A stretch of 63,960 bases of DNA, filler included, from Lenisia limosa (lineage: Eukaryota; Protista; Breviatea): NCBI GenBank assembly GCA_001655205.1. It is 15 parts of 15 records of this genome, joined end to end, with 100 filler letters (N's around TTAATTAATTAA, not from the genome) between each part and the next. Parts side by side here need not be neighbours in the genome. Positions count along the whole stretch, not along the records: positions 21,968 to 25,416 come from LPNZ01007752.1; 14 more parts are not named here. One strand, written 5' to 3'. This document shows, in pieces, positions 21,479-25,760 of the stretch. The notes under the pieces were generated by a model. It worked only from the letters and a program-made list of their open reading frames with translations. It was not told the origin of the DNA and did not search any database. The position numbers and the translations under genes are program-made. Numbering within the stretch: the first letter of the stretch is position 1; each line of letters begins with the position of its first letter.

Positions 21479-22059
21479 TATTGCAATTAAGATGACAAGG
21501 TATGAGCAAGAGTGCAGCAAATACAATAAAAAGTATGATGTATGCTATGTCTCACAGGGTTTTTAAAAAATACAATGATAAACTAGCTGCTAATGAAGAC
21601 CCTCACTTATAACTTGATTCAAAAACCAAGAAAACAGCCAGCCGACTAACAAACAACTCAAAAGACCCAAAGTTGATCAATGCTATGTGATAATGGAGGT
21701 ATGCATCTTACTCTTAAGTTATATAATATACATATGATATATGATATGTATGCAATACATTAGATTTCAGATTTCAGAGATTCCGATTTCCACTTACCTG
21801 AGACTAATGATAGATGAGGTGCGCTCAATCGGGTTAATTATCAGCTCTGTGATTATTATTATTAAATNNNNNNNNNNNNNNNNNNNNNNNNNNNNNNNNN
21901 NNNNNNNNNNNTTAATTAATTAANNNNNNNNNNNNNNNNNNNNNNNNNNNNNNNNNNNNNNNNNNNNCAGCAATTAAACAAACAAAGCCCAGGCCAGTCC
22001 ATATCCAGCGTACGTGAAATTCAACTACCCTTTCTCCCATAAAAAGAACAATACCCTAC

Positions 22060-25000
22060 CATGGGCACGTTATCGTAGGAGGAGGCCACGGGGAAGAGGC
22101 GGAGAGTGCATTGCCTCCAGACCCTGAACGGAGTAAGAGTCTGCATACTAGGAGGAGTAAAACGGGGGAATTTGTGAATAAGGTACCAAGAAAGACGGAA
22201 TTTCTCCATGGTCTGTAAAATTACAAAAAAGATGGAATTAATTTCTCGACATGTTTGGTAAAATTTCACTCAGAGACTTCGTCCACTTCAACAAAAACAA
22301 AACAAAACAAAAAAATAACTCACTTGTGCTTCTTGGCAAGATGGGCAAGAGAAAGCACCAAAAACATTAAAAACAAAACAAACAAAAAAACAGCAAACAG
22401 CAAAACAAAAACAAACCATAACCCACTTGTGCTTCTTGAGAAGATGCGGCAAGAGAAGCATCAGGCCGCCCTCCTGCACCACCCAGTAAATGTCGATTGT
22501 GCCAAATTGCAGGTCTCCGTAGCGCGGGAAATTCTCAACCTGGGGATAAAACGAAGGAAATTTCGATCAAGAATATTGGCGTAATGGGGGTAAAATAGAA
22601 CAATTTATGAAACATATTATACAATGACAGGGATAAGTCTTGACCGTTTTGCAATGTATTTCCTAAGGCAAATCGGTCAAGACTTATCCCGGTCACTGTA
22701 TATCAATATAATACCCCCATTCCCCCAGGGGGGATTCGGTGCTGATGTAGAGAATTCTACACAAAGAGTGGACTTTTGTTAAGTCTTTTGTTATTCACAA
22801 TTAAAGAGATATAAGACCATACCCCCTAACTCCTTGAACGATCAAAGCAGCCTTGTCCACGGTATTGACCTTCGAAATGGTACTGAAGAACGCTTCACCC
22901 TGTGATGTTAAGGGCAGTGCGGGTTTACAATATTTGTACATATGTATAAATATATAATTATGTGTATACTACATATAATACACTAATTATGTCATATATA
23001 CAATATGGGCATGATTTGTAATATGGGTGTTAAATTGCAATATGGGTGTGGTTGAGTGCTTCAAAATAATTGATTTGGGCTTTTTTGTTTCATAAATTTT
23101 CCAATCCCCCCCCCTCTCACAGTTTCCCCTACCTTCTAAGTCATATGATTGGGGCTTTCCTACGATCCGAAAAAGACCTTTCAAATATAGATATTTATCG
23201 AGGATTTATTGAGAAATTCGGTCATTTTTAGGACCGTAGGGAAGCCCTAGATATATTACATGTAGCACAACCCCCCACCTTTTTGATATCCTCATGCCAG
23301 TCACTTGGGAGGGCCATGACAACCGTATTGGGCTGAAGCATGCCCACTCCAGCGCTTTGTACCAGTGTGGCCACAGAGGCGTCAACGTCCCTGCATTAGT
23401 TACATTTATTTATATTAGTTACTAAGTTACCATTAGTTGTGTATTAGTTCTGTTCGTTGTATTAATTGGTGTATTAGCTGCATTAGTTGTATTTTACCAC
23501 CTCACGGTACAACAATAGTCTCGTGGAAGCCGTACATATGCGCCTCTGTCATTTCATCCACAAGCGCCTTGTCTACTACGGGTCGAACTGCACTGCGTTC
23601 ACTCAGAGAGCCCTGAGTGAGGGGTGTAAAAGGCGTGTTGAGAGTTGGTCAGGGGCTGGGTATGGGTGGTAGTATTAAGTTTTTTGCAGTAAAGTCTCTA
23701 TTGAAACTGATCATAGAGATCCAGCGGTTGGAAGGTATTATCAGTGACTGCGTAGTACGGTTGTAAGTAGGGCTTCCCTACGGTCCTAAAAAGACGATAA
23801 ATTCCGTCTTTTTTGGGACCACAGGTAAGCCCTATTGTAAGGATGTGTGGGGATGAATAAGGCACGGATTATCACCCCTGGTAGAACCGTAGCGTGATTC
23901 CTAAATAATGCCACCAACCCTCAATAATATTAAGCAACGAGAAATTAAAAATATGTTAGTATCTGGCCGAAACCGTCCACCTGTGCACACAGCTTTCTGT
24001 ATGCCTCCCCAATAGTAAGTAATCATAAACAATCAAGCTAGATCCCATCACCATAACAATAATGCCCCCCAACCTCAATCACAGCCATAGCCATACAGAG
24101 CCCCTTTGATGCCTTGAGCTGGGCGGCAAAATGGATCAAATTCGAATCGGCTAACTCGCGCCTGTTTGTCACATTGCTAAGTTGTTAAGAGGTGAAAAAG
24201 TTGCTAAGCTGTTAAGAAAGCAAGCAAAGCTATTGCCACGTAGTTAAGAAGAGAAATAAAAATAGTTGCTAAGTTGTTAAGAAAGCAAAGCAGTTTCAAA
24301 ATTTTGCTAAATCGTTTTGATTTCTTACCTCTCCCCTCCAACCACATAGCTAGTAACTGAGGCCTCCAGTTTTTGGTATGCGTGTCATGGCATTCGGCTG
24401 TTTCGAGAGCAAGCAGATTGTCTGTGAAGTTATTTGGGAATGCTGAAGTTGAATTTCAAAACAGTGTTGGATAATTTTGGGTAAACAAATATAATTAGGC
24501 GTTTTCAGTGTTAAAATTACATCTTCCCTCTGGTCCGAAAAAGATCCTGAAAATATCGATATTTATCGAGGATTTATCGACAAATTAAGTTATTTTGGGA
24601 CTAGTTAAATAGATATCACGAAGACAACACACCACCCCACAGGCCTTTTATTATTGTTTTAGAAAATTTTCCAATTTTACTCCCCCCCTCCCCCCGCACC
24701 CTTAGCCCGTTGGTAGCGGAAGCCTCTGAGGGAGTCGCCCCAATCCGCAGCCACGCCCTTCAACTCAATGTACTAGGGGGGGAGGTGTAAAGGAATTTAT
24801 GAACAAAAAAAAAGAGCCCAAATCAGCATTGTTGGCTGGGGGAGGCGGGAGTGAAACGAAGGAAATTTGATGAGGTATAAGGTCACGAACCAAATTCAAG
24901 AAAATTCCAAACAAAAAACAAGCAATAACAAACACAAGCAACCAACGCTAAAACTTGACAAAAGCCAGATGACAAAATCACAAAAACAGGTAGGGGGGGG

Positions 25001-25297
25001 GGGNNNNNNNNNNNNNNNNNNNNNNNNNNNNNNNNNNNNNNNNNNNNNNNNNNNNNNNNNNNNNNNNNNNNNNNNNNNNNNNNNNNNNNNNNNNNNNNNN
25101 NNNNNNNNNNNNNNNNNNNNNNNNNNNNNNNNNNATAAATAAATAAATAATAATATAAGAATATTCCCACCTTAAACACAGCCACAGCCACACAAATGGC
25201 AATCACTGCGGTGTACCACGAAATGATAAACATCAGCCCGATGCAGAAAATGCAGCCCAGGCCGGCTGAAGCCCAATGGAAAAGGCGCCATGTGGGC
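22060..25297 (-). CDS. SLC12A: SLC12 cation-chloride cotransporter (KCC-like), internal fragment
   Basis: Exons give PTWRLFHWASAGLG..ISWYTAV..YIELKGVAADWGDSLRG..HTKNWRPQLL..FAAQLKASKGL..QSAGVGMLQPNTVVM..GTIDIYWVVQEGGLMLLLPHLLKKHKVWRQCTLRLF. Confidence 0.95.
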
Positions 25298-25760
25298 CTG
25301 GAAAATAAAAACCAATAATCAATATATACTACTAGAGAAATTTAACCCAACCATTTGCCTTACAATTCTGTGCCTCACCCCCTAAGGAGCGCGGAAGTAT
25401 GGTAATTTGTTTATGGNNNNNNNNNNNNNNNNNNNNNNNNNNNNNNNNNNNNNNNNNNNNTTAATTAATTAANNNNNNNNNNNNNNNNNNNNNNNNNNNN
25501 NNNNNNNNNNNNNNNNAGTATAATGTTAATTGAACAGCTGAGTTCTTTGGAATAAAAAGAGAGGGTGTCAGTCATTTTAAAACCTTTGTAAGTTCAGTTT
25601 CATTTGTATTCGGGTATATGCATACATAATCTTGATCCACCCTCTCATCCTCAAGCCACTTATTTAATCATAGTATCTATTTCATAGCTTTGAAGTCGTT
25701 GAGAGGAGATTTGTTATCCTCTGCTACTAATAATTCACGTGTTTTAATTGACAACTGCAG

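Follow-up and report, generated by a model that had tools for sequence, protein, structure and literature searches.

The 63,960-nt window of Lenisia limosa DNA (Breviatea; assembly GCA_001655205.1) consists of parts of 15 records joined end to end; the present analysis concerns the genomic DNA at positions 21968-25416 (LPNZ01007752.1; 3.4 kb), and all tests were made within that single piece. Six-frame reading of the piece revealed a minus-strand SLC12/KCC-like gene with at least nine short exons and an intron density of about one per 90 nt of coding sequence. Here, we describe a short repeat in this gene, one end of which lies at the acceptor of one intron and, inverted, at the donor of the next.

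Exons of the SLC12/KCC-like gene were searched individually by reference. A 40-residue exon matched the Pfam SLC12 family (PF03522, E=1.3e-5), with a score kept under the gathering cut-off by the shortness of the exon, and the PDB matches of the 24-residue exon E2 were solely KCC chains (KCC4 residues 673-693, KCC2 and SLC12A7). Local tblastn with the full-length SLC12 homologues P0022, P0024, P0053 and P0064 gave collinear matches across nine exons, including the SLC12 C-terminal region and transmembrane segment 12 (TM12), and the gene carries the KCC-type motifs HTKNWRPQLL and GTIDIYWVV, which are suggestive of a holozoan. A representative search with exon E9, the source of the full-length homologues, returned 68 SLC12 matches of at most 64% identity, with no same-species protein among them; the cluster names for its relatives were nematode and Closterium only, and no relative emerged from a protein-guided metagenome scan that used the stop-free stretch 22566-22291. 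The exon-intron model, in gene order, is as follows:

25378-25298, minus strand: I0, short intron preceding E1
25297-25171, minus strand: E1, exon
25170-24773, minus strand: I1, intron that opens GTGGGAAT and closes CCCTAG; holds an assembly gap (N) edged by a C11 run
24772-24700, minus strand: E2, exon of 73 nt, YIELKGVAADWGDSLRGFRYQRAK + G, with inverted repeat copies c and a on its flanks; tblastn matches to P0022, P0064 and P0024
24699-24422, minus strand: I2, intron of 278 nt, GT...CACAG, with an unrelated degenerate copy of a miniature inverted-repeat transposable element (MITE) inside at ~24520-24605
24421-24343, minus strand: E3, exon
24342-24177, minus strand: I3, intron
24176-24074, minus strand: E4, exon
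24073-23613, minus strand: I4, intron
23612-23506, minus strand: E6, exon
23505-23391, minus strand: I6, intron of 115 nt
23390-23279, minus strand: E7, exon
23278-22900, minus strand: I7, intron
22899-22831, minus strand: E8, exon
22830-22540, minus strand: I8, intron
22539-22427, minus strand: E9, exon, with its start at 22539
22426-22124, minus strand: I9, intron; 22124 is the homology-favoured acceptor
22123-22060, minus strand: E10, exon
22059 onward, minus strand: I10, intron

A micro-exon candidate (E5) inside I4 was dropped; E4 joins E6 directly, and the numbering hence holds neither E5 nor I5. Upstream of the model, an exon fragment at 25376-25416 (...TSALLRG, joining PTWRLFHW) best fits the homologues; an in-frame TAA lies at 25413-25411, with no AG ahead of it within the piece. 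In I1, a run of N at 24993-25134 directly follows an 11-base homopolymer (G11 on the plus strand), and the length and content of this intron are nominal.

The central observation concerns the two junctions of E2. The plus strand at 24668-24699 reads TTTCCAATTTTACTCCCCCCCTCCCCCCGCAC, and its minus strand, GTGCGGGGGGAGGGGGGGAGTAAAATTGGAAA, directly follows the exon. The first-pass annotation had taken this tail (at about 24660-24699), reverse-complemented, as the donor of a minus-strand KCC intron after the residues QRAK. The tail is indeed present, with one C more in its second run than had been written (a trivial difference), and E2 ends ...CAA CGG GCT AAG G, that is, YQRAK plus one further base (phase 1). 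I2 opens GTGCGGGGGGAGGGGGGGAGTAAAATTGGAAAATTT / GTGCGGGGGGAGGGGGGGAGTAAAATTGGAAAATTTTC, with its GT at 24699/24698. This is the sole GT that keeps the frame from E2 to E3 (G + AC AAT CTG... = D N L L A L E): reading through past E2 meets a TAA about 20 nt on, and with a GTAAAA deeper in I2 the frame is lost with every nearby AG. In tblastn alignments, the homologues continue uninterrupted from E2 into E3 (24421): P0064 with residues 312-334, then 335-356, and P0022 with 463-488, then 490-510. Because this GT alone keeps the frame and homologue residues are contiguous across the junction, the predicted I2 donor stands.

On the other side of E2, the same module lies in the opposite orientation and forms the predicted I1 acceptor, ...AAATTCCTTTACACCTCCCCCCCTAG, at 24773, where the terminus of copy c (...CCTCCCCCCCTAG) is immediately followed by TAC of the exon. 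The E1-E2 junction (25171 to 24772) is contiguous in P0022 (residues 462/463; tblastn). One 73-nt exon is bracketed by inverted copies c and a of one module, and with the boundaries set by homologue contiguity, the GT of I2 would belong to copy a and the TAG of I1 to copy c. The proposal that the same end serves as an acceptor in one orientation and as a donor in the other is therefore borne out by two copies within the piece, and homology shows the module ends to be at predicted sites of splicing. RNA folding across E2 paired the C-run with the G-run at an ordinary energy (z = -0.82), leaving exon looping or circularisation unsupported.

The module is about 35-55 nt long, short, non-coding and multi-copy, with no open reading frame of note, and reads G-run, (A)GTAAAA, GGAAAATTT, ATGAAAC, A-run and GCCC(AAATCA). 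Its copies are:

24641-24699, minus strand: copy a, G-run first in gene sense; its outermost GTGCGG is the predicted I2 5' splice site; nhmmer E ~4e-6
23071-23123, minus strand: copy b, G-run first in gene sense; inside I7, 155 nt from the donor; nhmmer E ~7e-6
24773-24825, plus strand: copy c, C-run last in gene sense; ends at the predicted I1 3' splice site; nhmmer match
24836-24870, plus strand: copy c2, of a sub-type with the tail CTGGGGGAGGCGGGAGTGAAACGAAGGAAATTT, C-run last in gene sense; inside I1, 63 nt upstream of the acceptor; weak match to the main hidden Markov model (HMM), E ~2
22540-22566, plus strand: copy d, of the c2 sub-type, C-run last; ends ...TTCGTTTTATCCCCAG / ...TTTTATCCCCAG at the predicted I8 acceptor
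22586-22614: copy d2, the right arm of a nested element at 22577-22727, C-run last in gene sense; internal to I8; nhmmer E ~6e-5
22148-22180, plus strand: copy e, C-run last in gene sense; ends ...TTTTACTCCTCCTAG at a putative in-frame alternative acceptor of I9; nhmmer E ~9e-5
23613-23647, plus strand: copy g (weak), C-run last; ends ...CCTTTTACACCCCTCACTCAG at the predicted I4 acceptor; found by eye and by TTTAYHCC, with an HMM score that is not significant
Internal to I1, beside the assembly gap: f, a bare C11 run

Pairwise scores of the copies were compared with 300 shuffles each: a and b scored 34 (shuffles 13.8 +/- 2.4), b and c 41 (13.5 +/- 2.2), and a and c 23, a value reached by 1/300 shuffles. 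Iterated nhmmer recovered five confident copies (a, b, c, d2 and e) in 3 kb and in both orientations, with E-values from 4e-6 to 9e-5, besides about four weaker ones. The core motif TTTAYHCC, which was picked post hoc, occurred 6 times against 1.4 expected, and 0/100 shuffles reached 6. The c2 and d copies share a direct repeat (22542-22563 in d) that is 86% alike over 22 nt, an 8-mer, CTCCCCCC, is doubled in tandem at 24680-24695 inside copy a, and I2 has only one further 26-nt stretch in common with the part of I7 from copy b to its end (2/300 shuffles), whose MAFFT alignment with I2 was uninformative. A single-query scan with copy a gave only a modest excess over dinucleotide shuffles (scores of 15, 13 and 13 at ranks 2-4, where the shuffles peaked at 13, 12 and 12), and the case therefore rests on the family and not on one pair. 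Taken as a family, the tail is a genuine interspersed repeat, with copies facing either way along the gene. Of the five confident copies, two end exactly at the splice site appropriate to their orientation, and a third ends at the in-frame alternative acceptor, 24 nt upstream of the homology-favoured acceptor of I9 (22124). For at least two of five copies to lie at a junction, P is about 0.003 at a chance of 1.6% per copy, a hand estimate for a terminus at most 3 nt from an orientation-appropriate junction.

One copy of the module forms part of an element with inverted ends:

22577-22727, minus strand: nested MITE-like element U3 inside I8, with inverted arms of 21 nt (81%) in which the G-run/TA module lies

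The arms of this element, TGGCGTAATGGGGGTAAAATA and TATAATACCCCCATTCCCCCA, are built on the G-run/TAAAAT module and enclose a 35-nt internal hairpin. Their terminal inverted repeat (TIR) score was 22, compared with 12.8 +/- 2.3 for shuffles, of which 1/300 scored as high. Plausibly, the module makes up one arm of a MITE-like element, in which the likeness between the two arms is confined to about 12-21 nt. Significant cross-matches of intron ends were found between different introns: the 5' end of I2 matches the 3' ends of I1 and I9, and the 5' end of I6 matches the 3' end of I4.

We consider it probable to a modest extent that 24641-24699 is a copy of the terminal module of a MITE-like repeat, and that some of the introns have an origin of the introner type. 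The elements would be DNA transposons with short inverted ends of the G-run/C-run kind, and at least some introns may have been made or re-edged by their insertion. Inserted with its C-run last, the module would supply a branch-point-like TTTTAC, a C-rich pyrimidine tract and a YAG, a ready-made 3' splice region of the kind apparently used by I1, and related copies lie on or close to the acceptors of I8, I4 and I9. TTTAC and TTTTAC fit the yUnAy branch-site pattern. Inserted with its G-run first, it would present its outermost GTGCGG as a GT with G at +5, the predicted 5' splice site of I2. A further step, which we put forward tentatively and think rather unlikely, is that these copies represent a bidirectional introner family: a module of about 50 nt would carry a full 3' splice region on one strand and, on the other, a 5' site made of GT and a G-run, either boundary of an intron could be founded by it, and neighbouring insertions in opposite orientation would have bracketed the 73-nt exon. 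The introner-type reading as a whole fits the known introner class and is unprovable from 3.4 kb.

Several results weigh against this reading. An acceptor-side profile, which is weak and was built solely from acceptor-side copies, picked the I2 donor alone of the ten donors in the piece (3.7 bits; 0/100 shuffles). In an inverted-end test, which set the first 50 nt of each intron against its last 50 nt in reverse complement, no matching ends were found among introns I1-I9 (diagonal z from -1.2 to 1.9). By reading, no clear or consistent target-site duplication (TSD) was seen at the flanks of 22577-22727 or of copies a, b and c. No pair of introns is alike end to end, the similarity being limited to about 50 nt at one end, and ten introns are weak evidence on this point. 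The module also simply inserts into introns, as copies b, c2, d2 and f lie in intron interiors. Finally, P0054, a KCC fragment from another organism, has an intron retained in frame (V...Q), which separates HK from VWRKC and lies at most 1 nt from I9. The earlier suggestion that the ancestral intron-maker was a TIR (MITE-like) element thus holds in part: the repeat is real, lies in both orientations and has a TIR in the nested element at 22577-22727, yet no intron has inverted ends of its own. Likewise, a partner for the intron head was found neither within I2, I4 or I8 nor within the b element, and I2 itself is not demonstrably a TIR element.

The first-pass annotation had also expected inverted ends to explain the G-run donors and C-run acceptors throughout, and further donors to match the inverted tail; neither expectation was upheld, given the single match of the profile. 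At donor positions +3..+14 the frequency of G is 0.50, compared with 0.185 for introns as a whole (P<5e-5), and in the 12 nt preceding acceptors that of C is 0.36 (P=0.002). Every one of the 15 runs of at least five G or C falls within an intron or on an intron edge. Examples of G-rich donors are GTGGGGGG, GTTGGGGGG, GTTAGGGGG and GTTGGAGGGG. All ten donors (22060-25378) are GT with G at +5, most of them with G-runs at +3..+10, and T stands at +3 three times. The general G-richness of the donors is real, yet its derivation from the module is unestablished, and G-rich donors may reflect a species-wide preference at the 5' splice site or in splicing.

Such a preference is the basis of an account without common descent, by which G-richness after GT, and TTTTAC plus a C-tract before AG, are splicing signals of the organism that arose by convergence or low complexity. 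In its favour, ten of ten donors are G-rich and GTNNGG-like, of which just one matches the module profile, TTTAC fits yUnAy as a matter of general knowledge, and the single 40-nt query exceeds dinucleotide shuffles only modestly. However, the match between copies a, b and c extends over 40-50 nt and takes in ATTGGAAAATTT, ATGAAAC and GCCCAAATCA, words for which we know of no splicing role. Copies also lie far from splice sites and in the wrong orientation for such signals, and one is an arm of the nested inverted-repeat element. We therefore regard convergence as improbable.

The ends of the copies could also be read more literally, with the module as an arm of a perfect-ended TIR element, 5'-GTGCGGGG...CCCCGCAC-3'. 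Whichever way round it lay, this element would offer a GT, and its AG would be borrowed from flanking DNA or arise by a point mutation (GCAC to GCAG). GTGCGGGG does open copy a, and in I7 ...AAACCCGCAC stands beyond copy b, 17 nt short of the acceptor. GTG opens six of the ten donors, and CACAG/CTGTG is found at an end or start of each of I2, I7 and copy b. Nonetheless, these are a few trinucleotides read by eye, and neither the head of b against the rest of I7 nor the head of I2 against the rest of I2 scored above shuffles, which makes this version very improbable.

A stronger challenge separates creation of introns from their colonisation. The introns may be old and may simply have received MITE-like insertions, of which a few close to exons replaced or re-edged splice sites, so that no intron was created. 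About half of the copies are internal, as set out above, and copy e ends 24 nt short of the homology-supported I9 acceptor. The position of I9 is probably old, because P0054 retains an intron within 1 nt of it, and copy e would then be a later arrival. Unrelated MITEs (23768-23834 and others) likewise sit in introns of the KCC-like gene. On the other side, two copies end exactly at a splice junction with no spare bases, and the I8 position (between IVQG and VENFP) is uninterrupted in the KCC fragments P0004, P0036, P0052 and P0056. Because these four fragments read straight through, I8 may be lineage-specific, and the same may hold for some of the module-bearing introns. I8 combines a G-run donor with a module acceptor, and its first four bases agree with those of the next exon at 3/4 positions (GTTA/GTTG). 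On balance, colonisation of old introns without any creation seems to us doubtful. Returning to the transposon-end reading, its stronger form, in which insertion of elements founded introns, we place somewhat short of an even chance.

The piece holds other repeats. An unrelated 67-nt MITE at 23768-23834 has 25-nt inverted arms (TAGGGCTTCCCTACGGTCCTAAAAA) and is flanked by a perfect 7-bp duplication, TTGTAAG (23761-23767 / 23835-23841); further copies lie at 23150-23250 and ~24520-24605. The family looks recently active because the arm of its second copy is 25/25 identical. An exact metagenome DNA search with the arm of this MITE, GGGCTTCCCTACGGTCCKAAAAA, gave 0 matches, Rfam returned only sub-threshold miRNA-like hairpin matches on MITE hairpins, and ARAGORN found no tRNAs.

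Within individual introns, 22293-22463 is a tandem duplication with a 103-nt period that copies the last ~38 nt of E9 and the first ~30 nt of I9; its second copy is frameshifted and keeps the stronger-looking donor (AAGTGAGTT). Similarly, the end of E4 together with its donor recurs 154 nt deeper in I4, as a 22-nt direct repeat at 24058-24079 / 23904-23925 (ATTGAGGTTGGGGGGCATTATT / ATTGAGGGTTGGTGGCATTATT). The I3 region at 24174-24320 consists mostly of ~3-5 tandem units of ~32 nt with TTGCTAAGTTGTTAAGA (Tandem Repeats Finder score 104), and I6 (23391-23505) is packed with branch-site-like ACTAAT / AACTAATGCAG repeats, the last of which adjoins the acceptor. A second in-frame AG lies upstream of the homology-preferred acceptor in two introns, at 22148 (24 nt, +8 residues) and at 24443 (21 nt before 24422, +7 residues); the AG at 22148 is that of the TAG of copy e.

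Introners are intron-generating DNA transposons with TIRs and/or TSDs, known from Micromonas, Aureococcus, Symbiodinium, Polarella and many other organisms (PMC9860276, PMC12130899, bioRxiv 10.1101/2020.10.14.339549). TIRs occur in 72 of 177 assessable introner families and TSDs in 49 of 130, and introner splice sites are element-borne, recruited from the TSD, or both (PMC9860276). TIR DNA transposons account for ~82% of classified introners, whose hosts include animals (PMC12130899), and some classes of Polarella and Aureococcus make introns in either orientation (bioRxiv 10.1101/2020.10.14.339549). Like introners, the copies described here are short non-coding repeats with ends at a GT or AG predicted to be used as splice sites, in both orientations and with a TIR in at least one copy, and their host gene is very intron-dense. 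Unlike introners, their similarity covers one intron end and not the whole intron, the copies are diverged with no near-identical pairs, no TSD was recognised in the piece, and gain of introns is here only proposed. No words of the module were found in the supplement of PMC9860276.

Among individual systems, the closest parallel is with the Polarella glacialis ILE (introner-like element) classes 6, 8 and 10 and the Aureococcus introners, in which one family likewise yields introns in both orientations (bioRxiv 10.1101/2020.10.14.339549). In these classes, however, the 5' site is recruited from a TSD of 8 nt (GHN6), a duplication with no counterpart seen here. The Symbiodinium-type rule, by which the first four nt of the intron equal the first four nt of the next exon, fits I8 alone, at 3/4 bases, and ten of ten donors in the gene are GT, whereas GA and GC donors are common in dinoflagellates; a dinoflagellate origin was rejected on the strength of these GT donors. 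Ordinary intronic MITEs such as the one at 23768-23834 resemble the module in their size of 70-150 nt, TIRs, nesting in introns and several copies per few kb. That element, in contrast, is flanked by a clean 7-bp duplication and is unrelated to splice sites; the end of the G-run module repeatedly falls exactly on a junction.

The introner principle, with TIRs in many families and bidirectional use in some, has already been published, and what is new here is at most the family and its host. Any added value may lie in an explanation for the unusually G-rich donors of this genome, not in a new mechanism. If the module does found introns, it would be a compact natural example in which one transposon end serves as acceptor or donor according to the strand of insertion, and, if true, this would bear on the origin of intron-rich genomes.

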